Shown: positions 7,790 through 61,290 of the stretch, in pieces
Numbering within the stretch: position 1 is the stretch's first letter
Layout of the letters: every line of letters starts with the position of its first letter
Origin: Takakia lepidozioides
Taxonomy: Eukaryota > Plantae > Bryophyta
DNA length: 64,000 nt
Direction of reading: 5' to 3'
NCBI GenBank assembly: GCA_030704615.1
Contig: CM060732.1
Location: 65,844,001 to 65,908,000, forward strand
The notes under the pieces: generated by a model
Seen by the model: the letters and a program-made list of their open reading frames with translations, nothing else
Told to the model about the DNA's origin: nothing
The model's database searches: none
Translations under genes and position numbers: made by a program

Positions 7790-10660
7790 TCATATTAAAA
7801 TGATGTAAACCTGTACAACTTTATTTACAGGAAACATGAGGTATTTGAACATATGATAGAAAAACCAAAACCTGGGAAAGAACAAGGAAGGGAGGAAAGG
7901 GAAGCAAGCTAAACTCAACTATTCAAACTTATCAGTCATCCCAACCTACTGCCTGAAGTAGGTCAGAGGGCAACATGGGTGTAACGTCTGGGAGAGTTGG
8001 GAGGTGGGATGAAACCGATCCAGCTACGTCCGCCCGATGTAAAATGACCATTGCTTGAGATCTTCGTAATGCAACGGCCACTTTTTGTCTGTAAAAGGCC
8101 ACAAGAACAGACGCATAAGGAATGCCCGTGGCCTTGTTTTGGGCTGCTTGATGGGCGCATGAACGGAGTAGGTCGTCAAACTAGCGATGGAGATAGTTGA
8201 ATACCTCTACAGCCAAGAGGATGAAAGTGTCGGTAGGATGTTTGTCCCGATAGTCGCATTCCTTGACTTGAGCAACAACCATTGAAGCCGCGGAAGCCCT
8301 GGGAGGATGCCGAACGTGAAAGTAGGTCGGATCGGGTAGGGTCGGCAATGACAACGTCGGCTAGGGTGCGAAGACCATCTTTAGAGAGGATGATGTCGAC
8401 GTGTCATCGTGTGGACTGAAAAGTGTGAGAAGGGATGACATAAGATTGCTCTCATAGGACATGAAAACCAGCCTCTCACGTAATCGATGCGACAACGTCT
8501 CGGACAACGTCATGGGTGGTGGTGCGATCTTCCTCACATTGACATTGAAAGAGGTGGATAACAAGTGCGTTGATAGGCTGGTGACAAACACAATGTCGAA
8601 GACCTAACACAGAGGGATGCGGTAGCCCAAATTGCAAACGAAGAGCTGTAGCAAAGATGGGTGATGACAAACGAAAGGGGGTGATGGTGGGTTGAACTGT
8701 CAGCCATGCACCTGCACCTGGCCTTGCATAAGATAGAAGCCTGGCACAATGCACATAAGAGGAAAAGCTACTGGAAAGCATGCCGAAGAAGGAGTGTCGG
8801 TGCACGCGGTCCATGAGAGTCTCCTGTAGGTGATCGATGCCTTGGGAGCAAGCAACTGCTCGAAGGGAGGAAGATGCGCTCTTGCTGTGCCGGAAGAAGA
8901 TCTCGTGCAGAACAAAAATGTTGTTGGAAAGGGAAGATGCCAATGTTGACGTGAGCAATGGGGTCCATGAGCAGGGGTCGTTGACTGCACAGAAAGCGGG
9001 GTGCAAGAGCAGGGGCAATTAATGCCCAACTACCCAAGAACGCATAGGGGGAAGTGCTGACTTTGGAGAGCAAGCCTACACCTCCAAAGGAGATTGGAAG
9101 AACAACTTGTTGGCGAGCTAAAGCACCCTCGGATCCATCCAAATCCCCCGGTCCCAGAAGACGACCAAAGATATTCATGATGGTAGTATCAAACCTTGAC
9201 AATAATCACAAAAACTCAGGGGTAGGGGGAACGGTGACTGTAGAAAAGGAGGGCGGCAGAAGCATAGAACAGTCTGACAAAAGGGATGATTTGGTGAAAA
9301 TCTCCTCCAGCTGAGCGAAATTATTGGAAGATGACGTTGCGGGAGACGGAGCTAAAAGCGTTTGCTACATCGACTTGAAACACAACCGAGTCCGGCTGAA
9401 GGTCGAGAATAGCCCGAATCCCATGTACCACAGCCTCACAACCGCCTGGAGCACCAAACTGATGTGGGAAGAGGTGGGTAGAGAATGCATCACGGTACTG
9501 CATGACAAGGGAACGGCTGACGAGATGATACAAAACTTCCCCGATGGCAATGGGACGGATGCCATTTCCGGAGTGTTTGGTCATGGCTAGTAGTCGGGAG
9601 GCTCCGAGAATATGTGCCACTGCAGAGGGGATGCGGTGATGAAGGAACAGACTTGAAAGAGTTGGGAGAAGTCACTTAGCAGAGTCTTGTAGAGAAAAGC
9701 AGTCGCGCAAATGTTCGTATAACATACCAGATGGTCCTGGTGCAGAAAGATGTGGACTGCGGATGAAGGCCCTGGTGAACAGAGAGAGATCCAGTTGAAG
9801 GTCCTGATGCGGCTCGAAGTCATCGACAAAAGCTGGAAGGATGTTGTCTGCCTCAAGATGGAGAGCCTGTAGAGCGGCAATAGTGTCCATAGAAGGTGGG
9901 GCGGGGGCAAAGGTGACAGAGCGCGAGCTGCACGGGAATACTCGCCTACCAGTCCCAAGATGAGGCGGTGCCGAAGCCGCATGTGAGCAGAAGAGCCTGG
10001 TTGTGAGGAAGTGTCAGTAGGAGCACGTGCTGTCAGGGCTTGTGCTCGGAGATAATGCTCTTCTTGAAGATTCTCCCAGTCTCCCGCGAGAAAGCGTTGG
10101 AGCCGGATGCCAGTCTCTCTATGACCATCCTTGCCACCATGTGGTGCCAAAACCCAACACCACTGGGCAGACAACAGAAGAAGATACCACGCCTGATCCT
10201 CGGCCAGTTTGTCTAGAGGCATGCGAAAGCAATTTTGGACCTCTTGACAAAGGGTCACCGGGATGCGTTTGTAGAGCGGGGGCGGGGTACTCCCAAATGA
10301 AAAGCTCCAAGGACATCCAATGAGGAGAGCCACGCCCATGCAGTGGGTGGAGGGGGAGCTTGCAAAACACCGATGGGAGTCGGCACAAAAGAACCTTCAT
10401 GGTTAGCTTGCCGAAAGGCCGTGCAAGTGCGTTGGTGGAGAGCCAAACCTCTGATTCAGGCGAATATGCGACCGCAAGCCGAGCAATGAAGTACGAACAA
10501 CTGGTGATTGTGGAAATGGTGGAACCGTTTGGAGGGGGTGGAGCTGCTGGAGGGGACGTCAAAATGGAAGGTACAAGGGCAAAAGAGAGCTTTGCAAGGA
10601 ACTTTGAATGGATGAAATGTGTTAAAAACTTCATCCAACAGGGATGGAAACATCCTTAAG
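7790..10660 (-). mobile_element. Decayed non-LTR retrotransposon with RT and restriction-like endonuclease (CRE-like); boundaries approximate
   Basis: RT motifs IRPIAIGE, HQFGAPGGCEAVVHG, QVDVANAFSSVSR; LPISFGGVGL; ARPGAGAWLTVQP, RLQFGLPHP, C-x-C..H..C zinc knuckle followed by HDVVRD; REL-like DIILSKDGLRTLADVVIADP. Frameshifted, and the central RT (YxDD) is missing. AATAAA near the 3' end (~7820). Confidence 0.85.
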
Positions 10661-10882
10661 TGTCAACTCATCCTAGTGTCCTTAAGTGACCTTTGAAGCA
10701 CAAAATTTCAAGATAAAGCTCAACAGCAGCATTGAGATCCAGGACCAGTCAGGGCCTCATTTGGGTCTTCTTTATAAAGGTGTACACAGTGTTTCATGGA
10801 TATTCCTCATAAAACTTTACAGAGATTCATGTGAAGATGTTGGACTTGACTTGGAAATTGCATTTCTGTGAGAAACAAGGGA

Positions 10883-13800
10883 ATGCTTGGTTGTCTGCAA
10901 TCTCCCACAGGCACAGGGATGGCAGCGCGCTGTGCCGCGCAGGGAGAAGCCATACCCAAGGCCGTTTGTTCTCCCTGGGGTACAGGGGCAGGAAGTCTTA
11001 CCTCATGGAGCAGATTAGCTGGCCTGGCTGTGGAGGTGAAATGGGTACCCAGCGTAGGAAAGACGGCCCTCGGATCCTTGCGCTTGAAGTCTATGATAGC
11101 TCGTCAATCTTCAGGAATACAGGAGGAAGGTATAGACATTTATATCTTACTCATTCTCTTGGGTTTCTAAACTTCCTTCAATGACTGCTGATTTATCTGA
11201 AAGGTACGGGAATTCATCTTCTTCCTTTCCTTGAATGAGAGAGGTAGGTGCTTATGTACATTGCGGCCATATCTCTTGCGGAATGATAGACGTTGAAATT
11301 CAAGAAATTTTATTGTGCTCTAGCCTCCAGTGCACGTGCGATTGTGATGGCATTGCCAGTCACCGGTGCTTGAGAGGGAGGGAGAATTTTTTTGGTGGCA
11401 AGCCACCTCTAGTTCTCAAGACTCAAGGCTCAAAGACAATTAATGGCTGCTAAAGATCTATATGTACAATGTGTTTGCATGCAGGCCAGACAATGAGCAG
11501 TGATCGGCTCTGGCAGGAGTTCTTCTCAGATCCTTCGCAGTGGTGGGACAACAGGTTTGATAAGGTGAGGGTGCCTTCACATGAAAAAGTTTGTGAGCGA
11601 GAGCTTGTGATTGAGGTTGCTTGCATTAATGTCAATTTTTCTGTTTGTCTTGGAAGAGTTGCAAAACGCTGGTTCATTGGTATTGATATCAGAAGGTGGT
11701 TCTTCCTTATTAGCTAGGCATCAAAGTAGGACATACTATGCTTTTCCCCTGTTGTTTGAGAGATGCTTGAAGATTAACTGTTTGTAGGCTAGTGTAGCAT
11801 GTTTGTGTTTAAAGTTACAGCTGCTCAGCTTGGTTTTCACAGAAAAATCCAAACTCACCAGACTTCAGACATAAGCACACGAAGGAGGGCCTTTGGGTTG
11901 AGGGTTGGTCAAACCCATCTTGGGTGAAAGCAGAGCTAGCTGCCATGATACAAGGTCAAGCACAATGTCATGATGTCAGAACACTATGCATGGCAGGTCA
12001 ACTGAAACAGGCCCTGCACATTTTGAACCAACAAGTCATTTCAGCAGATTCTGACACTTACGTTTGTCTCCTGCGGGAGTGCACCAACATGCAATGCCTA
12101 GCAGAGGGAAAGCAGGTGCATGCCCACATTATCAGAAGTGGATTGAAGCCCAATGTCTTTCTACTCAACACCCTTGTAAACATGTATGCCAAATGCGGGA
12201 GTGTGGTGGATGCACGCCAAGTGTTTGACAAAATACCTGAACGAAATATGTTCGCATGGAATATAATGATAGCAGGATATGCCAAGCATGGGTGTGATGG
12301 GGAGGCCTTTGAGATCTATGAGCAAATGAAACGGGAAGGGGTGGCACCCAACAGGGTCACAATCACTTGCGTTCTCAAGGCATGTGCCAGTCTGGCAGCC
12401 CTGGAGAAGGGCACGGAGGTCCACGTGGACATTCTCAAAGCTGGAATTGAGCCAGATCTCATTCTCAACAACACTCTCATTGGCATGTATGCCAAATGTG
12501 GGAGCACAAAGGATGCACGCCAAGTGTTTGACAATATGACTGAGCGAGATGTGGTGTCTTGGAATTCCATGGTTGGAGGATATGCCCAGCATGGATGTGG
12601 TAGGGAGGCTTTTGAGGTATATCATCAAATGATATGGGATGGGGTGACACCTAACAGGGTCACATTCATTTGCATTCTCAAGGCCTGTGCCAGCCTGGCA
12701 GACCTGGAAAAGGGCAAAGAGGTTCATGCAATTATCATCAAATCTGGTGTTGAACCAGATACCATTCTTCATAATACCCTGATTGACATGTATGCCAAAT
12801 GCGGGAGCACAAGGGATGCGCGTCAAGTGTTTGACAATATGGCCAGGCGAGATGTGGTGTCATGGAACACGATGATCGCAGCATATGCTCAGCATGGGTA
12901 TGGTATGGAGGCTTTTGAGATCTATGAGCAAATGATACAGGAAAGGGTGACACCAGACAAAGTCACGTTGGTTGCTGTTCTGAAGGCGTGTGCCAGCACC
13001 AGAGCCATTTTCCAGGGCAAAGAGGTCCATGATGATATCATTGCAGCGGCAGTTGGGATAGATATGATTCTGGAGACTGCCCTTGTCAACATGTATGCCA
13101 AATGTGGGGACATGCAGGATGCACGTCAAGTGTTTGACAATATGGCTAAAAGAGATTTGGTCTCATGGAGTGCAATGATTGCAGGATATGCTCAGAATCG
13201 GTGTGATAGGGATGCTTTAAAGATGTATGAGCAAATGATACAGGAAGGGGTGACACCCAACAAGGTCACGTTCGTTTGCATTCTCAATGCTTGTGCTGGC
13301 CTAGGAGACCTGGAAAAGGCGAAAGAGGTTCATGCTGATGTCATGAAAGCTGGGATTGCATCATACATGAATTTGGAGAATAGCCTTGTTGACATGTATG
13401 CGAAGTGTGGGAGCATTAAGGATGCACGGGAAGTGTTTGACAGCATGGCTGAACGAGATGTGGTCTCATGGAGTGCAATGATTGGAGGATATGTTCAACA
13501 TGGTCGTGGTAGGGAGGCTTTCGACATGTATGAGCAAATGATAGGGGATGGAGTGAAACCTGACAAGGTCACATTCACTTATGTCCTCAATGCTTGTGCC
13601 AGCCTGACCGACCTGGAAATGGGCAAAGCGGTCCATGCGGAGATCGTCAAAGCTGATATTGTACAAGACATCAATTTTGCTAACACCCTTGTGAACATGT
13701 ATGCCAAATGTGGGAGTGTACGAGATGCACGTGAAGCGTTTGACAAAATGGCTGAACGAGATGTGGTCTCATGGAGCACCATGATTGCAGGATATGCTCA

Positions 13801-14488
13801 GCATGGGCGTGATACAGAGGCTTTGGAGATGTATGAGCAAATGAAACAGGAAAAGGTGACGCCTGACAAGGTCGCGATCTTTGGCGTTCTACATGTGTGT
13901 GTCCACCTGGCAGCCCTGGAAAAGGGCAAGGAGGTACATGCTGACATGATTGCAGCTGGAATTGTGCCAGATATCAATTTAAATAATACCCTTGTGAACA
14001 TGTATGCCAAATGTGGCAGCATAGAGTGTGCACAAGAAGTCTTTGACAATATGGCCGAAAGAGATGTGGTGTCATGGAAGGCCATGATTGCAGGATATGC
14101 TCAACATGGGTATAGTAGGGAGGTCCTGCAACTATTCGAACAAATGCAGCAAAGAGGCTTGAGGCCCGAGGGTGCAATCTTTATATGTGTTCTCTCTGCA
14201 TGTAGCCACATGGGCCTAGTGGATGAAGGCCGTCAATACTTCGAGTCCATGACTCGTGATCATAACCTCACCCCTACAGTGGATCATTTTGGCTGCGTGG
14301 TGGAGCTTTTTGGCCAAGCAGGGCGACTGGAGGAGGTAGAGGACGTCATAAACAAAATTCTAATTGAGCCAAATGCTGACGTGTGGAGGGCCTTGCTTGA
14401 TGCCTGCAGAACTCATGACAATCTCACGATAGCAGAAAGTGCGGCACAATGCCTTTGCAAGTTGGATGCACAGAAAGGGGCGACTTAA
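10883..14488 (+). CDS. PLS-class PPR protein with N-terminal putative transit peptide and OSB-type PDF motif; truncated in the E domain
   Basis: Exons 10883-11129 (phase 1), 11485-11564 (phase 0), 11843-14488 with GT-AG sites join in frame. PDF motif RLWQEFFSDPSQWWDNRFDK|KNPNSPDFRHKHTKEGLWVEGWSNPSWV, then 7 L-S-P triplets plus L2-S2 and E1 (VWRALLDACRTH). Start codon could be 10883 or 10919. Confidence 0.9.
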
Positions 14489-14915
14489 GAGCTGCTATCA
14501 GACATGACATGTGGGACAATGAAGGTGTAATGAGAAAAACGACACAGGAGAGGAATGTCAGAAAGGAGCAGGGTGCAGCTGCATTGAGGTGGAGAGCCGA
14601 GTGCATGCATTCCCTGTAGAAGATCAATTGCGTCTCCATATTGGCAAAATCAGAGGAAGGAGGTGGATTATGTGCTTGACACTATATGTATTTGCATGAT
14701 GTGGAGGAGCATAAGGAACTTCTCTTTGCTACCAGAGCCATTGCTTCTGGGCTGAGAAGCATGTCCCTGGCACGTCCATCCGCGTCTTGGAAATTCTCTG
14801 GGTTTCGTAGCAAATGCCAGCTTATCTCAAAGATTGTTAAGCAAGCAGTTGTCATATAGGATGCTGGTGCTTCCACCACTCAAAGTCAGGTCTTGTTTTT
14901 GTTTGGAGCAGCATG
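14489..14915 (+). pseudogene. Decayed E2/E+/DYW tail of the upstream PPR gene
   Basis: Frameshifted remnants VRKE.GCSCIEVESRVHAF, LHDVEEHKE, AIASGL, LISKIV, FHH, CFC immediately after the premature TAA. Confidence 0.8.
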
Positions 14916-16438
14916 ACAAAGGATGTGTCACTTCAAATGACTGTAAGATACCATCACTCCTTTGAGCAAGAGGAATAAAGTTGAAACAACGCAGTTACTG
15001 TCACTGCCGGGTAATGATAACCATTCCCAGCAAGTGATCATGGGCAGCAGTGACGAAGTTATGGAAATTGTTCTTGTGGAGGAATTTTGGACAACTATCC
15101 CACTTCTTTTCCAACTGGGAGGAGACAGACAATTGCACTCTGTTACAAGCAGTCCTCATCTTTGAGCTCCCACCTGCAAAGAGTTTAGTTGCACACCATA
15201 AGAGACTGTGCCTGTAGCAAAGCATTGAACACTAGTTGATAGATGCATTGCAAACACTTGCTCAACACTGACCTCACTCACATATTCTAAGTCACAACGT
15301 GCTCAAGGGAGTTGCCCTCATCAACAGACAGCTAGTCGCCATGGCCAAAGTTGGAGAGGAAGACAGGAAGGTGGAAGTCAGTAAGAAGCACAATGCGTAA
15401 GGCAGGAGATTTGCACCTAGATTCGTTGCAATAGCATCCCCATAGCCTCAGCCTGGAAGCTCAATACAGCCTCTTAGGAACAGTAAAATAACCAGTGTTG
15501 TGTGTATACAGTTTTGGACATACCCTCCGGGTCAGTATTGATCTAGACATACCATCAGAGAAGAGTTGGTATCCGGGGCTCCCCAGAGAAAGTTTTGTAT
15601 TAGCCTTTGATCTTAATGATAGAGGAGCCCGGGGACCATAGGGAAGCAATAAACCATATCGAGCCTGATAGAATTTGGTTGGCAATAAGCACGCGGCCTG
15701 CTAGAGAGGCGATATTGCGCAGAGTAGTAGGCATACTGGAGGACCTCTATAGCTAAAATGATTATTGAGCATTCGGAGCTATAGGAACTTTAGATGCATA
15801 TTCATCTCATGCTCGGACAACCTCTCACACAATGATTCAAGCAAGCCTGTTCAAGTTCAAACTTCACATGCACAGAATGCTAAGTGCTACAGTGCTCCAT
15901 TTCTGCTATTGCTAGCCGCTTCCAGTATTCTAGTTGGTACACATTGCCACAGGGCCACTAGAGCATTGAGCTTTATAATGAATCCACAAACAAGTGCTGG
16001 CAAAATTCATACACATTTGAACGAGCGACACTGGGCCACTGCTAGTCAGCATCCTTTGAAGATTAGACACTTGTTCTCTGGTGGGCACAAGCTGGTCCGA
16101 ATACAGAAAATATGTTGATCATTTGCTATCAGGTTTCCAAGTTCAGAAATCGATTGTCAATTGTCATGTTGTGGTCATGTATATTCAATATGCTACATGT
16201 CTGTATCATATCTGTGATTCTGGGTTTGTTGTTTCTGTGGACAACTCTTAGCTCCAAATTTGTGAGGCAGCTCTTGAGTGAACTCAGAAAGCATGACAAC
16301 ATCCCCTTGGGATTGTATACTAGCTGGGGTCCTGGATCTCCCGTGTATCTGCAAGCTATTGTTGACAAAGATTACTCCTGAGATATATACATCTGTGAAG
16401 TGAGCTAGGAACATAGATAATCTATGAATCTGCATCAA

Positions 16439-32532: not shown

Positions 32533-33648
32533 ATGAGTACACAGCAGGAGCAATCGCAAGGTGTGGCCTTTCTTAATGCACGATGTGAAGAAGTTTGTCC
32601 ATCCTGCAAATGGGGGCTCCTAGTACCATGATTTGTTATTCTTCCTGATGTTTACAAGGTTCTTGGGAGATTCAGCTTGGTCTTAGCAGGCCGTGTTTCA
32701 ATCTCTACTTGCTCAGCTGCACCGTGGTGGTTCTCACATACCAATCCGACATTACCTGACTACAGACACAAGCAGCACACACAGAGGTCCTTTTGGGTTG
32801 ATGGTCGGCCAAATCCTCCATGGGTCATGACACAAGGTCAAAGACAATGTGGTGAGGGCACTTTCTTCTTCGAACTATTTCAACCTGTTTTGCCCTCTCA
32901 TCAGACTCGGCCCTGACAAGTTACTGCCGTTGTGGCAGCATGAAAGTATCCAAAAATAGATGACAGAGATGAGGAGAAGCTTTGCATGAACACTTTTCCG
33001 ACCCCAGTCAATGGTGGGACAATGGAGACAAAAAGATGAATGTCTGTTGGACTACAGAGAGAAGCAGATGCAATTCAGAATTGGGGTGTCAGCTGCTAGC
33101 AGGTCTCCATGGGTCATGAAACAAGGTCAAGGACAATGTGGTAAGGGCACCTTCTTCTTCGACCTATTTCAGCCTGTTTTGCCCTCTCATCAAATTCGAC
33201 CCTGAGATGTGGGTCCAGATTCATCCAAGAGGGCCGGATTTCAAGCTCCAAATCACCCATGATTCCTTGTGGAAATGATAGCTACAAGAAACCTGCATGG
33301 GTAGATGGTCAACTGGAAGCCGCAGCAGTAGTGGTACAATTGATAAATTCAGGCACTGCTAATGAAGGCACCTTCTTCAAAACATTTCACCCTGTTTTTC
33401 CCTCTTATCACAATCGGCCCTAAATTTTCATGTTAAATTCTGCAAGTTAGCTGGTTGAGTGAACCTTTGATAGTTTGGAGTGACTTTGACATGATACTAC
33501 CAATGTGACAACACGGAAGTATCCAGAAATAGGTAACAGAGACGAGGAGAGGCTGTGGAATCAATACTTTTCTGACCCCAGTCAATGGTGGGACAATGGA
33601 GGCAAAAGGTGAATGTCTGTTGGATTACAGAGAGTAGCAGATGCAATT
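32533..33648 (+). pseudogene. Decayed multi-PDF-motif (OSB-like) gene 5' region, paralogous to the N-terminus of the 10.9-kb PPR gene
   Basis: TNPTLPDYRHKQHTQRSFWVDGRPNPPWVMTQGQRQC (~32739); EEKL..HFSDPSQWWDNGDK (~32970); cag|IHPRGPDFKLQITHDSLW..SYKKPAWVDGQL (33219); DEERLWNQYFSDPSQWWDNGGK|gtgaat (33541); internal duplication 32818-32916 vs 33106-33205. Confidence 0.8.
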
Positions 33649-34530: not shown

Positions 34531-37050
34531 CACTACAGCAAATGGGGGCAGGGGGGGGGGGGAGGGTTGTGATGCCAGCCACGCCCCGTGCGGCGCTGAG
34601 TGTGCGATGCTAACCCCGTGGAGCGTGTTTGCAACGTCGGGCCGTCGCAGCCAAACCCGCGGGTCGCCACCTGGCGCTCGGGCCAAGCGGCGACGCCTGG
34701 CCGTCGCAGCCAAACCCCACGGGTCGCCACCTAGCGCCGGGGCCAGGCGGCGACGCCTGGCTATCGCACGGGCGGATGAAGGGCAAAAGGCAACCCTTCC
34801 GTGCGACGCCCCCTAGCAAAGGGCAGAACGCAGCTCTTTCTGGCGACGGCCGGTCGTCGCACGCCGAAAAAAAAAACCCTTTCTTGCCCTTTCTTTCATC
34901 GCAGCCCTTTCTTGCGACGCCAGGCCGTTGCATGGTGGCATGAAGGGCAAAAGGCCCCTGCGACGGCCGGGCGTCGCAAACTGCCCGGCTGCCCTATTCT
35001 TGCAAAACAAAAAAAACAGGTCACAGTTTGCGACTGCTAGCCGTCGTCGTTTGCGACCCCAGGCCTCATAAATCCATTCAAAAAACAGGTCACAGTTGGC
35101 GACGGTTGGCCGTCGCCGTTTGCGACCCCAGCCTCATAAATCCTAAAAACCGCGTCGCAGGTGGCGACGCGTGGGGGTCGCAGGCAGCGACGATAAGGCT
35201 TTCTAGGTTTAGGTTTAGGGCCTTTAGGGGTTCCTAGTTTTTTTTTTTTTTTTCATATGGTACTGGGGTAGGGTGTTTGGTTTTATTTATGGTTTAGCTT
35301 GTTGTTGTGGACCTTCTTGTAGATTGTGACATTCATTTTGATAATTCTCTTGATACCACATCTATATGTGTTGCTCCAACATATTCATTGTCTCTGCCTT
35401 CTTTCTTGAAAGACTACCAGCCACAGCCATATTTGATCAATCATAGAAATAAAAGTATAATATGCATGTACATGTACAATCAATCGAAGGGATAGGTCCA
35501 GTTCGGTGCGAGAATTGTTATCATATAGGGTCCAGGATGCATTGTCCAGGGCGTCATCATCCTCTTCAACTCTACCCAACCTCCATCATCAGCATCATTA
35601 TGACCAGTCTCTCCGTCCACCGCAATTGCCTCACCCCATGGAGATCCGAGACCATGATAGATATGTCTTCCTCTTGGTTGAGCATGCACAACCACCTTCC
35701 AATTCCCCCCTCTTGTTTTGTCATCGGAGAAGAAAACTTGCTCCATGTCTGAAGGCCGTGAAAAATGCTCATCGGAGGGACGATGAGTAGGGTTGAGCCT
35801 ATCTGCATTGACGCGCATGAAACCACAATCATCTTGCACTAGTGTTGCGGAGGGCCCCACAAGATGTGGCTGGAACCACCTTCCCTTGAAGAGAAGAGGT
35901 CAGTACCTTGTATACTGAAGTTGGAGTATGCTCTCAAGCTCTCCAATGTACTCAAGTTTGCTCATAGCAGGTCGTGTATCTCCCTTGCCCCACACGGAGT
36001 CTTGCCAATATGTGGCACACAAGCCAGAATCAAAGGTTGTTTTGCGCTTCATGTCAAGAGCACGAATGCAGAAATGATGACCGTGAACCCAAACCGCCAT
36101 GTATGAGGTCGCGAATTGAGAGAGGCCCCTTGCAATGTCTTGCACCAAATCTGAAACCACCTCTCCTTGAGCAACGACGTCATAAACTGAAGTCCGAAGC
36201 CACTGTTGGAATGAACTTAGAGGCTGCAATTCCATGGGCAAATTTTGTGAAGGAACATTCCGGCGGCCCGCTCCTCATCGAGGGCGTCTAGTAACCGACC
36301 TTGGATGGTTCCGCCTCCATGCAAGCGTCTCCTCCTCTCATTGGCGCTGAACAAGATTATTGTATCTTGCCTCCCACTCATGTATGGATGGGGTGTTCGT
36401 CAGTATGAAGTCATGCGCTTGCTCAATCACCAAGGTCGGCAATTTTACCCTCTTCGATTTTTTGGGCAAAACGATGTCCTTGGTTCGTGCATCCTCCTCT
36501 TCCTTCCACATTCGAGGGGCTTCCTCATCCACCCTTGCCATGTACTCCGTGCAATAGAACATAGCTTCTTGCAACGTATACCCCTCCGCCATGCTACCCT
36601 CCGGGTGCGCCATTTGTCTTACAAATCCTTTCAAAGTCTTCATATAACGCTCAAGGAAGTACATCCACCGAGAATGAACGGGGCCGGCAATCGAAGCCTC
36701 TTCCACTAAGTGCACTTGGATGTCAAAGAAAGAGGGATGAATGTGCATATCCAACATACACATTACCTCCGCCGCCTCCTTCTTCATGTGTGGAAAATCT
36801 GTTTCTTCCAACTCTTTGGAGCAAATCCACCGAAACAAGCCTCCTAATCTATAGATTGTCTCACGAACCTCGGGAGTCAATGTTCCACGTACTGCAAGTG
36901 GCAAGATGTCTTGCAATAGATTGTGGTAGTCATGAGACTTCAAACCATGGACCCCGTCTTCTTCGCTGAACTTCATACGGAGGGATGACCCATAACCAGT
37001 TGGTGTTCGGACAGCACTTATGGTGGCTATCACTTTCTTGTATTCCTCCT
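34531..37050 (-). mobile_element. CACTA (En/Spm) transposon fragment: one terminus plus decayed transposase C-terminal half
   Basis: CACTACAGCAAATGGGGG terminus, dense GCGACG/CGTCGC subterminal repeats to ~35190; transposase motifs GLKSHDYHNLLQ, FFDIQVHL..GPVHSRWMYFLERYMKTLK, HPEGSMAEGY, QVFFSDD...WKVVV; frameshifted. Confidence 0.9.
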
Positions 37051-37051
37051 C

Positions 37052-39225
37052 TCTACAGCAACATGCTTGTCTTTGTCTTTTGAATGATGTTTCTGAATGT
37101 ATCCCATCCATGCCAGCAATCGGTGGTTGCCGTCCCAGACGTAGAACATGTGGTTGTAGAATTGTTGGGTGTTATTTCCCATCATGAGGCCCAGCTCGAA
37201 CTCCTCATTAACATCTTACCAACACTCATCCCAGGTATCGATGATCTCAGGAGACACTAATGTGTTTTTCCCATTTGTATCCATCAGTGGCATGCACCAA
37301 GTCTGTATCCATGCACAAAATCTGTTTCCAATTTTGTAATGTCATGGGAAAGTGGAGGATGCACAACAGGCATAGATATCATCCGGCATAGTGGGATGTC
37401 AAGACGCCCTCCAGAGACGAGCATGTCCCTAATAACCTCCTGAGAGTTTACCTTATGGAATGACATGAGTTCTTTCACCTTGTCAAGGTAGTGCACTTCA
37501 GGTTCATCTGTTTCATCGCTATTCTCCGAGCTCTTGGCATACTCGTCCCCATCTCCAGAACCTTTTGCCTATGTTCATGTCAGCTTGGACTTCACAGTTT
37601 TCTGCACGATGCCATGCCAATCAGACATTCAGTTATGTGCAAATAGTGATGGTTGGCACCGACAATCACAGTCCACAGGCAAAACAATGACAGCATAGTG
37701 ACTTCAAACTGATTAAAAATGTTCAATGCAACTTCTTTACAATAGAAAGTTCTCTATGTTCTGAAGGGACAACGATTGGCGGTACCGACAATCATAATCT
37801 ATACGTGTATCTTGTGTTGTGGAATATGGCAAACCAAATCACTGTGTCTGCAAAGTGAATGTCAGTACCGACCATCAGTTTGTCTTGTCTCAAATCACAG
37901 TGATTGGCGGCACCGACAATCACAACCATCTACACTAACAAAGCTGATATAGACGAATGCAAACCAAAACACTATGACTGCATAGTGATGGTCAGTACCA
38001 ACCATCACTCTCTTTCTGGGCAAGCAGGTACAGAAAGGTTTTGAGCATTAACGAACGGCGTTAACAACAATAAAAAAAACATTACACTCGAAAGACTGAC
38101 ATGATCGGTTTGGTGCAAAGAAATATATCTCATAGTGATTGGCGGCACCAACACTCACTTTAGTTTGTAACAGAAAGTGAGAGGAATGCACATTGTCTGA
38201 AATGCAAGAAGTCTATGTTGCAAAGGAAAGAGATCGACGTTAATCATAGAGACTCCATTGTGATGGTCGTTAAAGACAATCACTATTTCTTGTCTCTTTG
38301 GTATGTACTTTGCAACTGTTTTTAGACATGAAGCTACAGTATGGTCTCAAGAAAAGTGATTGGCGGTACTGCCATTCCTCTTCCCTAGTCTGTTCAACCT
38401 GAAACAGAGAAAATGCAATGCGAAACAATATGACTGAATAGTGATGGTCGGTGCCAACCATCACTCTCTCTCCATGCATGCAAGTACAAGAAGCTCACGA
38501 GGAGAATCAAATGGCGTTAACGACACTCACACTACACTAGAATGGAAAACATTGCGTTTGGTGCAAATCAATACTGGATCATAGTTACTGTCCGCACCGA
38601 CACTCACTTTCTTTTGTATTAGAATGTGAGTTTTGAAATGAAAGAGAATGACGTTGCCGACAATCACAGGTTCCTGCTACAGAAAGAAAGAGAAAGAGTG
38701 CTGGAAAGGCAATCAGACTGACTTTATGATCTGAAAAACAGTGAATGGCGGTACCACCAGTCACAAACAACTGGTATGGAAAACCTGAAACAGAAGAATG
38801 CAAAGCAAATCAACATGACTTCGTAGTGATGGTCAGTATCGACCATCACTTTCTAGGACATTTCACTCACTCACTTCGTACATCTGTAAACATGAAAAGG
38901 AATGGTGAAGAACACTTACTGGCGCCTTCTTCGGTTTTGAGTTTGGATCCATATCTACAGCTTTCCTCTTCCCCTTCACATCTGTCGGAATTCCTGTCTG
39001 GTCTAGGGTTTGTAGACCTTCTTCCGGTTCTGCATTCCCCGGACTTCCACCTCCTTCAGTTTCCTTGCGAATCATCTCTGCTTCCACAGTCTAGTTTCCA
39101 ACGCTCATTGTTCCTTCTGGTTGTGTGACAGCTGCAACCTCATTCTCGGTCTGCTCTTGTGTTGCAGTCTCCGCGTTCACCTGCTGCCGTGGCCCTGTGT
39201 TCTCCATCAAACGACGCCTCGTCAT
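37052..39225 (-). pseudogene. TE-associated gene with ParB/sulfiredoxin-like domain; two exons, 3'-truncated
   Basis: Exon 1 39225-38920, phase-0 GT-AG intron 38919-37602, exon 2 in frame: DIPLCRMISMPVVHPPLSHDITKLETDFVHGY ... MFYVWDGNHRLLAW (DGNHR at 37134-37120). In-frame stops are TAG/TGA/TAA consistent with C-to-T decay; one frameshift. Confidence 0.7.
37645..38850. repeat. Array of 13 imperfect 26-bp palindromes, idealised AGTGATGGTCGGTACCGACCATCACT
   Basis: Copies start at 37645, 37771, 37854, 37899, 37984, 38134, 38259, 38355, 38440, 38583, 38643, 38740, 38825. Confidence 0.88.
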
Positions 39226-46094: not shown

Positions 46095-46565
46095 ATTGTC
46101 AGTTGCTAGCAACAAGGCAAAGATGTATGCATAATTTGTGCAGAGGCATGGATAGCTGAAGGAGCACGGATGGAGTGTGGGTCCAGATTCATCCAAGAGG
46201 GCCGGATTTCAAGCCACAGGATAGCTATAAGAAACCTGCATGGGTAGATGGTCAACTGGAAGCCGCAGCAACATCGGCACGATTGATAAAATCAAGCACA
46301 ACTCATGAAGGCACCTTCTTCAACATGTTTCACCCTCCAAAAACAGTAACAGAGATGAGGAGAAGCTGTGGAATGAATATTTTTCTGACCCCAGTCAATG
46401 GTGGGACAACCGAGGCAAAAAGGTGTATGTCGTCAATTACCAGATGTCATTCTGAATACTTCCCTGGTGGACATGTATGCCAAATGTGGGTGCATCGAGG
46501 AAGTAAAGGAGTGTTCAACACTATGGCTGAATGAGATGTGGTGTCGTGGAGTGCGATGCTTGCAG
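46095..46565 (+). pseudogene. PDF-motif relic joined to PPR fragment
   Basis: IHPRGPDFK..SYKKPAWVDGQL; DEEKLWNEYFSDPSQWWDNRGK; then PDVILNTSLVDMYAKCG. Confidence 0.8.
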
Positions 46566-49384: not shown

Positions 49385-51848
49385 CGTCAGTGTCAGCTGC
49401 TAGCAGCAAGGTTGAGGATGTATTCACGATATGTACACAGGCATGGATAGCTGAAGGAGCAATGATCGAGTGTGGGTCCAGATTCATCCAAAAGGGCCGG
49501 ATTTCAAGCTCCAGATTACCTATGATTTCCTGTGGAAGGATAGCTACAAGTAATAGATGGTCAACTGGAAGCCGCAGCAGCAGCGACACAATGGATAAAA
49601 TCAGGCACTGCTAATGAAGGCACCTTCTTCAACACATTTCACCCTGTTTTTCCCTCTTATCAGAATCGGCCCTAAATTTCCATGTTGAATTCTGCAAGTT
49701 AGTTGGTTGAGTGAATCTTGTTTGGAGTGACTTTGACATGATACTGCCAATGTGACAACAAGATAGTATCCAAAAACAGGTAACATAGATGAGGAAAAGT
49801 TGTGGAATGAATACTTTTCTGACACCAGTCAATGGTGGGACAACCGAGGCAAAAAGGTGAATGTCTGTCAGATTACCAGATGTGATTCTGAACACTGCCT
49901 TGGTGGACATGTATGCCAAATGTGGGAGTATCGAGGATGGCAAGGGAGCGTTCAACACTATGGCTGAACGAGATGTGGTGTTGTGGAGCGCGGTGCTTGC
50001 AGGGTATGCACAGCAGGGACGAGAGATGGAGGCGGGATGGAGGCTTTGGAGACCTATGCGCAATCGATGGGGGAAGGGGTGAAGCCTGACCACATCACGT
50101 TTGTGTGCAAGCCTGGCACCCTGGAAAAGGGCAAGAGGTGCATGGTTGCATCACCAAATCTGCGAAGGGAGGGTTCGACACTATGGCCAAATGTGATGTG
50201 GTGTCGTGGAACACGATGCTTGCAGGGTATGCACAGCAGGGGCCCGGGAGGAGGCTTTGGATACCTATGAGCAAATGATATTACATGTATGCCAATCAGG
50301 GAGTATGAAGGATGCGCATCAAGTGTTTAATAAAATGGGTCAACGGGATGTGGTCTCATGGAACACCATGATTGCAGGATATGCCCAGAATGGGTGTGGT
50401 AGGCAGGCTTTGGAGATCTATGAGAAGATGCAACGGGAAGGGGTGACACCCAACAGGGCCACGTTCCTCTGTGTGTTTGAACGCCTGTACAAGCCTAGGA
50501 GCCTTGAAAAAAGGCAAAGAGGTCCTTGTTAACATTCTCAAATCTGGAATTGCGTCATATATTAACTTGGAAACTGCCCTTGCGGACATATTGTACGCCA
50601 AATGCAGGAGCATGAAGGACGGATGACAAGTATTTAAGAGTATGGTTGTACGAGATGTGGTCTCATGGAGTGCCATGATTGCTGGGTATGCTCAGGATGG
50701 GTGTAGTAGAGAGGCATTTGAGGTTTATAAGAAAATGCAACAGGAAGGGGTGACACGCAATAGGGTCACCTTCATCTGCGTCAGATATAACTTTGGAGAA
50801 TACACTTGTGACATGTATGCCAAATGTGGGAACATGAAGGATGCGCATCAAGTGTTTGACAAGATGACTAAATGAGACGTGGTCTCATGGAGTGCCATGA
50901 TCGCATGATACGTACAGGATGGGTCTAGTAGGGAGGCTTTCAAGATCTATGAGCAGATGGAACTTGAAGGGGTGATGCCCAACCATGTCACATTTATTTG
51001 CATTCTCAATGCGTGTGCCAGCCTTGGAGCCTTGGGAAAGGGTAAAGAGGTCCATGCTGACATCCTGAAAGCTGGAATTATGTCATGTGTAAATCTGGAG
51101 ACTGCACTTGTAGACATGTAAGCCAAATGTGGGAGCTTAGAGGATGCGCGTGAAGTGTTTGACAGTATGGCTAAACAAGATGTGGTCTCATGGAATACGC
51201 TGATCATAGGATATGCTCAGCACGGGTGTGGTAGGGAGGCCTTGCTCCTATTGGAACAAATGCAACAGGAAGGTGTGAAGCCTAATAGTAGTACCTTCAT
51301 ATCTGTCTTTTCAGCATGCAGCCATGGGGGCCTAGTGGATGAAAGCCATCAGTGCTTTGATTCCTTGAGACAAGATCATGGTCTCACTGCTACAGTGTAG
51401 CATTTTAGCTGCATGGTGGACTTTCTTGGCCGTGCAGGGCGATTGATGAAGCAGAGGACTTAATTAACACATGCCAATCATGCCAGATGTTGGGGTATGG
51501 ACGGCCTTGCTTGGTGCCTGTAGAGTTTGGAGATGTGGAGATAGCAGAACATGCAGCAAAGAGCATTCTCAAGATTGATCTGGAGCACTCTGCGGCTTAT
51601 GTGTTGCTATCAAACATTTATGCTGCGACTGGCAGGTGGGATGATAAAGCAAGGGTGAGACAATGGTATCAGAAAGGAGCCAGGGTGCAGCTGCATTGAG
51701 GTTGACAACATGATGCATACTTTTGTTGTAAGAGACAAATTGCATCCACAAATTCAGGAAATTCATGCTGAGCTGCAGAGATTGTTTGGGCTGATGAAGG
51801 GGGTGGGATATGTTCCTGACACACGCTTTGTGTTACATGACATTTAGA
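49385..51848 (+). pseudogene. PDF relic + PLS-PPR + E/E+ pseudogene
   Basis: PDF block 49385-49860 (DEEKLWNEYFSDTSQWWDNRGK), many P/L/S motifs with stops, SACSHGGLVDE, AAYVLLSNIYAATGRWDD, KEPGCSCIEV, GYVPDTRFVLHD. Confidence 0.88.
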
Positions 51849-54888: not shown

Positions 54889-56188
54889 AATATATCATTG
54901 CAAGCTATCCTTACTATCAATCGGGTAGCTCAGTTGGTAGGGAACTGAGTGCCACAACGGTGGTTGTGGGTTCCACCTCACCTGCTGTCTTTGGAGTGTA
55001 ACTGTCCCTTCCCTTGGTGGGTCCCTTGAGCATCTGGTGAGAAAGAAAAGAAAAGAATCATGTACAATCACATTATGCATTCGAATTATCACCAATCTGC
55101 AAAAATAGTGCTGGTCTTGTATCATGTTCAGGACAACCAGACTGGTAGGATACCAAAGGTTCCACAAAATGTTCATACCAATCTGCTATACATATATTTG
55201 CAGATGTATTTTGTCTAGATACTCTGATATGAGTATCTAATATCATGATCACAATACCAGCTGGTCTCAGGATGCCAGACCATCGTATAGACATATTCAC
55301 AGACCAGACTTGGTCTGGTCTTACATACGAGTGCATATACCAATACAGTATAATTATATAGGGTAAAACATGTTGCCCGTGTAAACCTTGGTCATTAGCT
55401 AGATTGTAGAGTTATCGGTAAATTCTCAGGTCAATTCCACCCACTTGAAGGGCAATCTCGTCAGTGTCCAGCGAGGATGCGCGTTTGTATTCAATTGGGG
55501 TCCAAGTCCAAACTCAAAACACTTGCCTAGACTCATTGGCCGGTCTGAATTTGCGGATAATTCACTGAGAGTAAGAAGCCCAGTCTCTGCTTTATAGCAC
55601 CTCTGCCCACTTTCTCTGAAGTCATTTTCATTTGCTTGGGCAGACTAGAAAATCCAGGGAGGTCAGAGTCATGCAATGGCCTCAAAGTAACAAAGGAGAA
55701 GAATGAGCAGAAGGAGAATAGAGGGCAGGAATGGGGAGCAGGGCAGGTGGCAGGGGCATTGATGGGGGCACCCGGAGAGCAATGAAGAGCGGGGACAGCG
55801 ACAGTGAAGGTTGAGAGGGAAGGGCGGTCCTTGGATTCTGCCAGCGAGGGGGACCCACAAAAATACAAAGCGCAAGGTTGATGGCAGCGCGCAGTCTTGT
55901 CTGTACCAGCAGGTGAGAGTGTGTCAGAGGGTCAGACCAGCTCCGACCATGCCCACCTCCATCGCACTTACTAGGTATTGCGCCGACGGAAGGCGAACAA
56001 GGCAGGCCAGAGCGGGGACGAAGGAGTTGGTTGGGCTAGGGAGCAAGGAGACCCATTTCATTCCAGCAATCTATCTTCACCACAGTGTACAATGATGATG
56101 GTGTCCTCCAGTGCCAAATGGCTGCTTATGCAGAAGAAACAGTGGTGAGTGACGGTGATGGCTGCACGGTGATGGCTGCAGGAATGTG

Positions 56189-59100
56189 ATGCTTGTGTTA
56201 GAGAAAATGGAGAGTTTCACACGCACTGTTGGGGCACTGCTGTGGCTGGTGGCGTCTTTACCTGCATTGTGCGCGATCGCTCCAGACGCCGAGCTGCTTC
56301 TGGCTTTTAAGAACGGACTCCAGAGTCCTGGCGTTCTTGCTAACTCCTGGTTAGCGAGTAATGTGGACTCTGCTGGGTGCCCCCAGCAGTGGTACGGGTT
56401 AGAGCTCACAGAACCTAATTGTCGTGTTACTGCTCTTTCTCTAACAAGTCTGTCACTTTCTGGAGAAGTGACGCCTGCTACATTGGGCGGTCTGTCGCAG
56501 CTTATGTCCCTCTCCCTGTCTAATAATCTTATCAATGGTTCGCTGCCAAATGACCTGGGAACCCTGACGCTGCTTCAAAACATGGACTTTGCTCATAATT
56601 TTTTGGAAGGACCTATCCCTGATAGTTTTGGGGCCCTTCAAAGCCTGGTTAACATTTCGCTAGCTGGCAATGCCCTTTCGGGCAGCATCGCACCCGTTCT
56701 AGAGCTCCAGCAGCTGGAGTCGCTGAATCTCTCCGCAAATGCACTCACGGGTACCCTACAGTTCAACAGTACTCTCGTGCAAACCGCCAAATTGAAGGGG
56801 CTCGACCTCAGCAACAATCAGCTTGCAGGCGCGATCACGCCCTTGCTCGCCAGCTTGCCCTTTCTTTCTCTTTTGAACCTCTCCTCTAATTCCTTCTCCG
56901 GAATAATTCCTCCTGAACTTGGGCGATGCAGTTCACTGATCTCACTTGACCTTAGTAGGAATAAGCTATCAGGTCCCACACCCACCATGGACCTCATGGA
57001 GGCGCTAGCGACGCTCAGACTTAGTGATAATGCACTCATCGGCTTTGTTCCTCAGCAACTGCTAGACGACCGAGCACCGCTTCTGCAAGAGCTGGACTTG
57101 ACCAGGAACAGCCTTTCCGGTATTGCTCTCTATTTTCTTGTGTACCCAAGGAAGAGCTGGTGGTTTTTGATGTGTCGCTAGTGTCTCAAGTTGCAGTTTT
57201 GAAATTTGTCTACTTCTATGTACTTCGAGGGTTTGTTTGTGGCTGCCCTTGGAGGGTTGGCGGAAATAGGGACGAAAGGATGGGTTTGTAAAGTTGTAGT
57301 CACAAGCCTTGCAGATGTATACTGGTCTGTCAGGTTCTGCTGAATGAAAATTTTAAACTGGTTCTAAAATTGGAGTGAAACCGAATGTCAACTTTGTGAA
57401 TCAACTCGGTTTGTGTTCTTGCTCTCATGTTGGGTCCACGAGTTTACATATAGATGATGGGTGCAATGATGGGATGGGTTCTTGTTGTGGGCTATGGAGG
57501 GTGCAGGCATGTTGGGACAAATAACCTCAAGCACACTGAAAATAGTAAAGCTAGCTTCGAATAGGCTGGAGGGTCCACTCCCAGCTAAGCTAGGGTCATG
57601 TGTGGCGGTAGACCTCAGTAGTAACCTTTTTTCTGGTAACATTCCGTTGGGAGGCTGGACCTCTAATTTAGAAATGCTGAACCTTAGTAACAATTCCCTC
57701 ACAGGCCTTCTTGACCCCGAAGCTTTCAAGCAGCTCTTTAGATTAACATCTCTTGATGTTAGCTTCAATCAGCTGGTGGGATCAATTCCCTCCAAGCTTT
57801 TCACATCCCAATCTGTGACACAGCTAGTCTTGTCAAACAATGGTTTCACTGGATCTCTTCTTTCCTTGCCATCTCAGATGATGGCACCTCTTCAGATATT
57901 AGATCTTTCTGATAATCGCTTGACAGGACAGATCCCAAGCACAATAGGGGGTTTTCCAGGGCTGCAAGTGTTGAATCTAAGTGCTAATCAGCTGTCAGGG
58001 AGCATCCCATGGCAGCTGTCGAAGCTTTCTCTCCTGCAAGTCCTGGATGTTTCCATTAACTCTCTAAGTGGCCCAGTTCCTGCGATGCTTCCAGCTGGCC
58101 TTAAATGGTTAAATGTCTCATATAACAACCTAGCTGGCACTATTCCTGCAAGGCTAGTGACACTCTTCTCAAATTCATCCTTTTATCCAGGGAACCCACA
58201 TCTTCTGTGGCCAATCACACCTGCCTTTCCAGATCCTTCAAGTCAGGGAGTGCAGGTCAGCCTGAGGAGGGGTCGGAAAAGAACAGGGTTGGCTGTGAAA
58301 GTTGGGCTGATAGGAGGGTGCACTGTCGGAGCAGCACTGGTTATAGCATGCTTACTAGTTTACTACCGGAACACCTCCAGGTCTGCAAGGAGCCCCAAGT
58401 TGGTGAATGTGTATAGGGATGGCAAACCTGACCCTGATTTCAATGCCGACAATGAGCATGGTGAGCCCCTACCCTCGGTGCAAAGGGGGGCTGCTGGAAG
58501 GAATGTCTCAGTAGCAACAGTAAAGGCTGAGGTGAAGCTGGATGGACTAGACTTGCAGAAGAGTGAGGAATCACCAGTGCGGGCCAAGTGGCAGACAGCA
58601 GCAGCAGTGTCCTCTGATGACGACTCCTCACAGTCTGCCGAACATCCCATGGTATTGAAAGTCCGTTCACCTGACCGGCTTGCGGGCGACCTTTTCTTCC
58701 TTGATGCCTCTCTTCTCTTTACAGCTGAAGAGCTCTCACGTGCCCCAGCTGAGGTGTTGGGCAGGAGCAGCCATGGCACCTCCTACAGGGCCACACTAGA
58801 TAATGGCCATGTCCTCACTGTCAAGTGGCTCCGTGAGGGCCTAGCCAAGAGTAAGAAAGACTTTACTCGTGAAGCCAAAAAATTTGGCGGTATCAAGCAT
58901 CCTAATGTGGTTTCACTGAGAGGCTATTATTGGGGGCCTCGCGAACATGAGAAGCTCCTACTGTCGGATCACATCAGCGCAGGCAGCTTGGCTGCTCACC
59001 TCTATGGTGAGTCTCCATCCCATTTCATCATGTTGTTATGTTTGTCATTCACAAATGCCATGCCTACATTTGACAAATGTCACATCCCTTTGAAGATGCA

Positions 59101-61290
59101 ATTAAACTGACATGCAGAGTATTGGAAAAGTTTGTGCTTTGTTTGACAGTAGGTTGGCATGAGTGTTGTTTAGAAATTCCCAACCTTGGGGATGGATGTG
59201 CCTCGGGGCATGGTAGTCCAGATCCAAAGCTGTTAAGACAGTTACCCTGATCACACAACCTTTAAAAGACTCTTAGGACTACTTGAAGTGCCTAGTGGAC
59301 ACTAAACAACAGCTAATACTGTTCTTCCTCCAATTTTGCTGCATGACTGTATCTAATTGCATGTCTGCTGCTCTATTTTCACAGAGTGCCAGTAAGTGCA
59401 ATCTTCCAAATTTGATTGCCTGGTGTACCATAAATGTGTTGCAGCCTAGTGTTTTGAAAATCACACGCTAGCCTTTTGATAAAGACTGCACCACAGTGGA
59501 AGGAGGTAGATATTTTGGGCCTTCTTCAGACTGGTTATCTTGCAGCCACGCACCCAGTAGGCTAGACACCCTCCCAGTTGGGTCTTACTCTTGTATGATC
59601 TATTTTGTCTTTTGGCAGCCGGCAACGTTATCTGTAGCTGGTGGCAGTCAGGGAACATTGAGAAGTAAGTTATGGAAAGAGTCCAAAATGGTCTGTGGCG
59701 ATCATAATAAGAATATTGCCAACCCTGCTGGTCTTAAGTTCGTAGCAGTGAACATATTAGTACCTTCACTGCTAGTTTAAGTGTAGACCCTGCAAGCATA
59801 TGAACTGGAGGGAGGGACATGTCCTCATTAAACTCGGTTTGTTGCAGCCTTGTGGCCATACACCTGTAACCATTTTGGGTTAAGGTGGAGAGGGGGATAT
59901 GAAGAAGGGAATTTACAGCCATCAGCAGAGCTCGCTCCAGTATTGCAACCTCCATAACCTCAATTAATCCAGAAGGGGTTCTCCTTCTATTATATTGATT
60001 ACACTTATGCCTTCAAAGTCGCCTTGTAGACCTTGTTCCCAGACTTGGAGCTGTTTAGAGGATGAGGAGATAGAAGGAGAAGCAATGATGCACAAATCCT
60101 TGCTCCAAGAACAGGACTAGCAAGCTCTTTTGATTTCCCAGGTTTTCTCGCAATCGATATTCTACCCAAAATGATGTCCACAAGTGAGACAAAGGTGTTT
60201 TTTTCTGAATGGGTAAGCTTAGAACTTAAAAGATGACACATGACAGCGAGTGACTGCGGCACGGTTTCCTACTGTGGTGGTGGTGGTGTCACATTGTGAA
60301 GCAGCCCATGGTGTGGTTGTTATCCTTGAGTGCAGGTCGTGGCTTCAGAAAACTCGGTGAGTGGCTACAGTTGTTTATAGTGGTGTATAGACTTCATGTA
60401 TCCCCCGCCTGCCATCAGATGCTTTGCAGGTGATTGGATGAAGGTGGAGGCACTCGTGCATGAATGAATGAATCGTGCTACACTAGCAGAGCTGCACTCT
60501 TCTTTTCTGGTCAATGTGACTTTCAGGTCTCCTCAGCCTGGCCAGATGAACTACATGCCTGAGTTGAGTATGTAGTTTGTATTTCTTAGGGGCTTGGTGT
60601 AGCACACCTTGGAAAAGGTCTGGAAAGCCAGATCTGGAAAGAGCAAGGCTGTCTAGAGGAGAGGGTGCACCAGTTTTAAGTACATGGCTGGGTGCAGATA
60701 CGACAGGGTGCAGGCATCAATCTTTGACTTGGGAACAGCGACTGCAAGTAGCGGTGGGTGTTGCGAGTGGGTTGGCATATTTGCATGGTAAGCAGGGGGT
60801 GGCCCATGGCAATCTTAAGGCCAGTAATGTGCTACTGCAGGGCCCACAGCTGCAGGCACGTGTAGCTGACTACTGCCTGCATCGCCTTATGACTGCTGCG
60901 GGTACTGCCAACCAGATCCTGAATGCTGGTGCACTCGGCTACCGCTCACCAGAACTGGCTAGCACACGCAAACCCAAACCGTCACTGGCAGCAGATGTCT
61001 ATGCGCTGGGTGTAATCCTGCTGGAGCTCTTGACAGGCAAAGGTGCAGGCGACATTATGTCCGCCAACTGTGGGGCAGTGGATCTGCCTGATTGGGTGCG
61101 GCTGGTGGCCAATCAAGGGAGGCCTGTGGATTGTTTTGACTCGGCCCTTGTGGGTATTCACAGAGACCAGGACCCTCCCAAAGGAATGCATGAGGTGCTC
61201 ACCATCGGGCTTTCCTGCATGGTTCCTCAAGCAGCCAGACCGAACATCCAAGTTGTGTATGAGCAGCTTGCTGCTGTCTTGCCTAGCTGA
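56189..61290 (+). CDS. LRR receptor-like kinase, LRR-III subfamily (SIRK1/GHR1-like, atypical kinase)
   Basis: Exons 56189-57119, 57507-59006, 60698-61290 in frame; signal peptide, plant LRRs, TM (VGLIGGCTVGAALVIACLLVYY), SPDRLAGDLFFLD..FTAEELSRAPAEVLGRSSHGTSY, HGNLK, ADYCLHRL, GALGYRSPE. Confidence 0.95.

Follow-up and report, generated by a model that had tools for sequence, protein, structure and literature searches.

The subject of this analysis is a gene on the forward strand of a 64,000-nucleotide stretch of the Takakia lepidozioides genome (contig CM060732.1 of assembly GCA_030704615.1, positions 65,844,001 to 65,908,000; the whole stretch is called the window, and all coordinates refer to it unless another gene is named), in which a PDF motif of the type carried by plant OSB proteins is joined to a PPR array of the PLS type. 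All parts of the gene lie on the (+) strand. Its putative exon 1 (10883-11129, 82 codons plus one nucleotide) is presequence-like in translation and ends in phase 1, intron 1 (11130-11484, GT..AG) splits a Gly codon, exon 2 (11485-11564) encodes the N-terminal half of the PDF motif at 11502-11564, and intron 2 (11565-11842, GT..AG, phase 0) divides the motif, whose second half forms the start of exon 3 (11843-11947). The PPR motifs (11945-14374) abut the PDF motif and lead into an E1 motif (14375-14476), which was recognized by motif parsing and by alignment to P0064 of Diphasiastrum complanatum. A premature TAA (14486-14488) stands in place of the first conserved E2 residue, and beyond it follow the decayed remains of E2 and the PG box in a different reading frame (14489-14624), a decayed DYW remnant (14692-14915) and a transcribed 3' region (14916-15194). 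At about 990 residues, the encoded protein would start with a presequence-like region and continue through a single complete PDF motif and 24 PPR motifs to E1. We consider it likely that the locus is a transcribed and spliced member of an old PLS-PPR family of seedless plants, which acquired the PDF module of OSB proteins as a cassette. The E2/DYW part of this copy is dead.

Exon 3 is in frame with an open reading frame (ORF) of 854 codons at 11924-14488 and matched only PPR families in Pfam (PPR_2 at 7e-126, PPR at 7.6e-119), and a Pfam search of exons 1 and 2 and of the tail matched no family. Pfam contains no model of the PDF motif, and the N-termini of the full-length homologues are likewise without a Pfam family. 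Because no exon matched the SSB domain (PF00436) in Pfam either, the locus does not qualify as an OSB gene; the PDF module is all that it has in common with this family. Motif parsing gave seven P-L-S triplets followed by P2-L2-S2 with a period of 101 residues, which makes 24 motifs instead of the 23 repeats counted in an earlier note on this DNA; the first one is degenerate and begins at residue 35 of exon 3, where the final helix predicted for the PDF motif ends. Exon 1 lacks Asp and is rich in Ala, Gly and Ser, and its designation as a transit peptide or presequence is a guess from this composition.

To identify relatives of the PDF motif, a profile (A1) of 26 PPR-borne PDF motifs was searched against 1.84 billion representative proteins, which yielded 1206 representatives at E <= 0.001. 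The best matches are mostly proteins of about 250-520 amino acids with several copies of the motif, usually toward the C-terminus. The profile finds P0160 from Asparagus, which is named "protein OSB2, chloroplastic-like" (E 1.7e-36) and has a weak Pfam SSB match of 24.9 bits, under the curated cut-off of 26, as well as P0152 with an SSB domain at 5e-14. An SSB-like domain is present in 72 of the 159 proteins that were classified from the A1 match list and cluster members, and it lies N-terminal of the PDF motifs in 71 of these 72. A second profile, a hidden Markov model (HMM) made exclusively of 129 PDF motifs from SSB-domain (OSB-type) proteins, scores 29.1 bits with exon 2 of the window gene, aligned at positions 2-22, and 46.3 bits with the 35 residues that open exon 3, aligned at positions 23-56. 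Both halves abut exactly on this OSB-only HMM, and the motif is therefore not a chance match. By this alignment the window gene has one complete PDF motif, a homologue of that in OSB proteins, which bears out the OSB type that had been assigned to it before.

The PDF module is confidently predicted to fold as a helix, three short strands and a helix (pLDDT 85.9). A Foldseek comparison of this model with the PDB gave no relative at E <= 0.001, which is not proof of a new fold, and a wide VIA-align search reached a best Z of 2.6, with no solved structural relative. A homologue search restricted to the PDF region of the window returned nothing, and the same search with the PDF region of Ceratodon P0087 returned only this protein and one paralogue; the word index behind both searches is too coarse for a 50-residue motif, so that these blanks are uninformative.

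PDF motifs also occur in a number of unusual proteins. About nine tandem copies are found in P0122 and its cluster members from the dinoflagellate Effrenium voratum, on contigs of up to about 1 Mb. P0121 of Kingdonia uniflora is a protein of 1160 amino acids with 13 PDF motifs and a weak SSB match, P0165 of Coptis chinensis combines a kinesin motor with three PDF motifs, and P0158 of Striga hermonthica, named as a ROP interactor, has PDF motifs and a weak SSB match (23 bits, under the Pfam cut-off). The odd architectures of P0121, P0165 and P0158 may be merged gene models.

The RNA evidence consists of contigs from two runs of two studies of the same organism, which were aligned to window positions 10400-15400; the RNA type of the runs was guessed, and the empty introns fit cDNA. 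RNA-type contigs cover the exons, with zero depth at 11235-11401 in intron 1 and almost none (about 0) at 11569-11735 in intron 2. A joint from 11562 to 11841 (GT..AG when the cut is moved by +2, that is 11564|11843) is present in three contigs of one run and in one contig of the other, and a 126-nucleotide contig that matches exactly crosses this joint. The PDF motif is therefore assembled by splicing. The upstream junction 11129|11485 is backed indirectly by an exact contig of 344 nucleotides, which follows the genome over 10837-11127 and then continues with 53 letters without genome match, departing two bases before the proposed donor, and by the phase 1 and split Gly codon that match a Sphagnum gene. 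Splicing of three exons in frame, as proposed in the earlier note, agrees with the translations and phases, and it is directly seen in the contigs at the second junction and supported indirectly at the first. At the other end of the gene, contigs with at most one mismatch span 14202-14966, and the TAA is kept in exact contigs over 14202-14706. As the contigs run through the stop, the 3' end of the mRNA includes the stop codon together with the dead DYW region; the transcribed 3' region is covered by a near-exact contig (1 other letter) to 14966 and by a divergent contig (5 other letters, 21 gaps) to 15194. In summary of the contig evidence, the locus is transcribed and the PDF-PPR fusion is present in mRNA.

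The depth of about 1950 in exon 2 comes from many paralogous transcripts which share this exon. One contig in each run has a joint that leads from 11902 back to 11508 ("goes back 395"), which would be expected if a paralogue with two PDF units in tandem is expressed; several Diphasiastrum proteins have such tandem units.

The position of the second intron connects the window gene with other PPR genes and with OSB genes. PDF motifs are interrupted by a phase-0 intron behind their conserved central Lys in the window (11564|11843), in a PPR gene of Sphagnum fallax (L001, 3969|4116), in a PPR gene of Diphasiastrum (L003, 2147|2237) and in all three PDF units of an OSB2-like gene of Asparagus (L002; 4531|4632, 4935|5064 and 5439|5526), where it follows a four-residue insert in unit 2. 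The introns which flank the PDF units are in phase 1 in Asparagus (4749|4829 and 5202|5378) and in Sphagnum (3331|3890, with a split Gly codon), and the window model 11129|11485 has the same phase and also a split Gly. Judged from these gene structures, the PDF unit is a two-exon cassette with the intron phases 1-0-1. This phase symmetry allows exon duplication and shuffling, and the shared intron counts against convergence and retroposition. The tree of the 59-residue PDF motifs is poorly resolved; a tree in which the PPR-borne motifs were held together lies 27 log-likelihood units above the free quick tree, and a single origin is not rejected (p-AU 0.78). The simplest reading, which is not proven, is one old fusion early in land-plant evolution with subsequent tandem duplication in the lycophyte.

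A search with the full ORF returned PLS-PPR proteins of Diphasiastrum complanatum as best matches, with 50-53% identity over the PPR part. N-terminal PDF motifs in one to three copies are present in 30 of the 120 best PPR homologues, among them P0087 of Ceratodon purpureus (1420 amino acids, with DYW) and P0001 of Calypogeia fissa. The 159 classified proteins contain 12 PPR-bearing proteins, in all of which the PDF motif precedes the PPR array, and these come from Diphasiastrum, Adiantum and Sphagnum. Public proteins of this architecture include P0064 and P0068 of Diphasiastrum complanatum, P0149 of Adiantum capillus-veneris and P0297 of Sphagnum fallax. Within Sphagnum the fusion was found in S. 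fallax, S. jensenii, S. tenellum, S. troendelagicum and S. compactum, and Diphasiastrum complanatum has it in many genes. Altogether, the PDF-PPR fusion spans mosses, a liverwort, a lycophyte and a fern. None of the conifer and Ginkgo PPR matches of the homologue search has a PDF motif, in a sample that is small and not a test of absence. Intact DYW motifs were found in 11 of the 30 PDF-bearing homologues; in Diphasiastrum, E2 or the PG box marks the end of 19 of 30 PDF-bearing proteins, and DYW-less copies are therefore common.

These homologues are annotated only as hypothetical or PPR proteins. No paper connecting PPR proteins with OSB proteins or with the PDF motif turned up in a full-text literature search, and a review of moss PPR proteins from 2022 (PMC9459714) does not list PDF among the PPR accessory domains, with 0 occurrences of 'PDF'. 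The PDF-PLS PPR hybrid family is real and ancient, and apparently it is undescribed. This is in agreement with the earlier note, which had suggested a hybrid family of an architecture not known as a characterised class and had proposed a search for PDF-PLS-DYW copies with intact HxE and CxxC, such as the 11 homologues mentioned above.

The window gene can be compared with several known systems. With the OSB proteins (Arabidopsis OSB1-4; Zaegel et al. 2006, summarised in PMC6963530 and PMC4166229) it shares the PDF motif of roughly 50 residues with the same invariant Trp, Asp, Arg, Lys and Pro-Asp-Phe positions as well as the phase-0 intron inside the motif and the phase-1 flanking introns, and the tandem copies of OSB proteins have their counterpart in the one to three copies of the PPR-borne versions. 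In contrast to OSB proteins, the window gene has no SSB-like OB-fold, and its PDF motif is N-terminal and leads into the PPR array, whereas in 71 of 72 OSB-type representatives the motifs follow the OB fold on its C-terminal side. The P-L-S triplets, the terminal P2-L2-S2 and E1 are those of PLS-E1-E2-DYW editing factors, and the lack of an own deaminase is shared with the angiosperm E-class factors (PMC9522420, PMC7076377). Unlike these PLS and E-class factors, the window gene has an N-terminal PDF module, and its protein ends before E2, with the loss of DYW still visible as a decayed remnant in the 3' untranslated region. The combination of a PPR tract with a second small module is also known from PPR proteins with accessory domains such as the RRM of maize PPR4, PPR-SMR proteins and the LAGLIDADG protein OTP51 (PMC9459714), but in the window the module is an OSB PDF motif. 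The public PDF-PLS(-DYW) proteins have the same architecture and, where checked, the same exon structure, and the difference is that 11 of 30 keep intact DYW motifs which the window copy has lost.

Relative to intact homologues, the tail carries several lesions, with at least two frame changes. Behind the TAA, the PG-box remnant (14529-14624, matched by intact homologues in tblastn) lies in a second frame and the DYW remnant (14692-14865) in a third, and a further frame change affects the end of the domain. Two deletions of four codons each take out the HxE and CxxCH motifs, a TAG follows at 14858, there is no Pfam DYW match, and paralogue transcripts have one extra C after 14568. The E1 motif with a decayed DYW tail that had been noticed earlier is in this way confirmed, and this copy has no working deaminase. 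At least six disabling lesions are located in a tail of roughly 430 nucleotides compared with none in about 2.97 kb of upstream coding sequence, and a rough Poisson estimate for an open upstream frame at the frameshift rate of the tail is about 1e-6. Therefore, selection or possibly gene conversion has most likely preserved the PDF-PLS-E1 part since DYW was lost.

Different explanations have to be considered for the structure and the state of this gene. It is hardly conceivable that the PDF exons are a separate upstream gene or fragment which is joined to the PPR ORF only in the model. Such a view would be in keeping with the common absence of introns from PPR genes and with the scatter of decayed PDF fragments through the window, but the joint 11564-11843 with its canonical ends is found in contigs, both introns are without depth, and genes of Sphagnum and Diphasiastrum are annotated with this structure as well. 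Barring misassembly, the contigs that join 11564|11843 refute a separate gene. A far more serious alternative, to which we give a substantial chance that stays below even, is a transcribed pseudogene, in which the loss of E2 and DYW killed the gene and the PDF-PLS part is not yet broken or was patched by gene conversion. The stop falls within the normal architecture of the family, the DYW region is heavily decayed, the depth of the exact contigs is low, an out-of-frame ATG lies upstream, and other dead PDF and PPR fragments are found in the window. Set against this are the contrast in lesions between the open 2.97 kb and the tail (the estimate of about 1e-6), the 24 PPR motifs, all of which still score strongly, and the 19 of 30 Diphasiastrum PDF-PLS proteins that also end at E2 or the PG box and may represent a tolerated DYW-less subclass. 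Between a functional DYW-less site-recognition factor and a transcribed pseudogene, the balance is roughly even and inclines slightly to the functional factor.

Several observations weigh against our interpretation of the locus as a spliced member of the PDF-PLS family with a preserved PDF-PLS-E1 part. The junction 11129|11485 was not directly observed in the contigs, and exon 1 has no similarity to the N-terminus of any homologue that was compared. The ATG at 10837-10839 is formed by the first bases of the transcript contig, precedes the proposed start and is out of frame with the gene model; its frame misses the PDF motif across the proposed junctions, and translation of the PDF-PPR frame could be lowered by it. 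Contigs that match the locus exactly have a low depth (13-26), and paralogues dominate. The open PLS frame could be maintained by gene conversion from paralogues and not by selection, and four other decayed PDF/PPR fragments indicate that the region carries dead copies. Finally, PPR56 of P. patens edits in E. coli with only 14 residues before its first PPR (PMC10482289), so that catalysis, at least in PPR56, does not depend on what precedes the array.

Decayed copies of the first-half PDF exon are located on the (+) strand at 32990-33025, 33555-33610, 46355-46425 and 49795-49860 and have the same boundary of a Lys codon followed by GT. A decayed second half lies near 33225-33275, and the fragments at 46430 and 49870 run almost straight into pieces of PPR S motifs. 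The four PDF fragments look like dead or rearranged family members, which are perhaps repeat-borne.

PPR-DYW proteins are a model for programmable organellar RNA editing and OSB proteins guard the stability of organellar genomes, and the intron-marked transfer of the ssDNA-binding (single-stranded DNA-binding) module of OSB onto editing factors links both systems. What appears to be new here is a PPR editing-factor scaffold with a PDF accessory module. The fusion is a testable handle on the way substrates are found in vivo, for example co-transcriptionally or in the nucleoid, and on the ligand of the PDF motif; the value of the single locus is smaller, in that it shows a DYW-less PDF-PLS copy which is open and transcribed.

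With regard to the mechanism, we assume that the PPR tract would read a specific organellar RNA site, and that the PDF module would add a sequence-independent grip on single-stranded nucleic acid or on a partner. If it is functional at all, this copy without deaminase might serve only as a site-recognition factor with DYW provided in trans or as a non-editing RNA binder. Recruitment of the DYW domain in trans is known from angiosperm E-class PPR proteins (PMC9522420, PMC7076377). According to PMC6963530 and PMC4166229, the PDF motif of OSB1 suffices for ssDNA binding, and OSB1 and OSB2 favour ssDNA over double-stranded DNA or RNA. By analogy, the PPR-borne PDF module could bind ssDNA and tether the protein to nucleoids or R-loops. 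In a wider and quite speculative scheme, which we regard as improbable in its entirety, the PDF motif of seedless plants would let organellar editing factors grip a single strand, be it nascent RNA, an R-loop or nucleoid ssDNA, a second time and regardless of its sequence, or would be a dock for partners, and recognition would in this way be coupled to transcription or complex assembly; MORF/RIP proteins may have taken over this task in seed plants, and DYW-less copies would be recognition subunits.

Two other functions of the PDF motif can be weighed against binding of single-stranded nucleic acid by the PPR-borne module. A role in protein-protein interaction or oligomerisation, by which editing factors would be assembled or a DYW protein or helper would be recruited in trans in lineages from which MORF/RIP proteins are not known, is in our opinion rather unlikely, but it deserves consideration, as AtOSB2 is a tetramer (PMC6963530), the number of tandem PDF copies varies from 1 to 13 in different proteins, the motif is found on PPR proteins only in seedless plants within our sample, and DYW-less members are common. 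No partner is known for such a module, and the only PDF experiment reported in the summaries of PMC6963530 and PMC4166229 is the binding of ssDNA by the PDF motif of OSB1. We consider it very improbable that a PPR-DYW deaminase is directed to ssDNA by the PDF motif, with C-to-U conversion in DNA, or that the motif couples editing to transcription at R-loops. The preference of the OSB PDF motif for ssDNA over RNA, as stated in PMC4166229, and the intact PDF-PLS-DYW members in Ceratodon and Diphasiastrum speak in favour of this idea, but the PPRs form an ordinary PLS array of the RNA-reading kind and no member of the family is linked to DNA by data. For the window copy, the targeting of a deaminase to ssDNA that the earlier note had considered is inapplicable, since the deaminase was lost by deletion of HxE and CxxCH, stops and frame changes.

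Other genes in the window belong to different families. At 56186-61290 (+), ORFs carry LRRNT_2, LRR repeats and also a protein kinase domain, which fits a multi-exon LRR receptor-like kinase gene. An ORF at 36341-37111 (-) contains DUF4218 (1.2e-28) and adjoins a gene noted earlier as a ParB-like transposable element gene; DUF4218 is usually found in transposase-associated proteins of plants.

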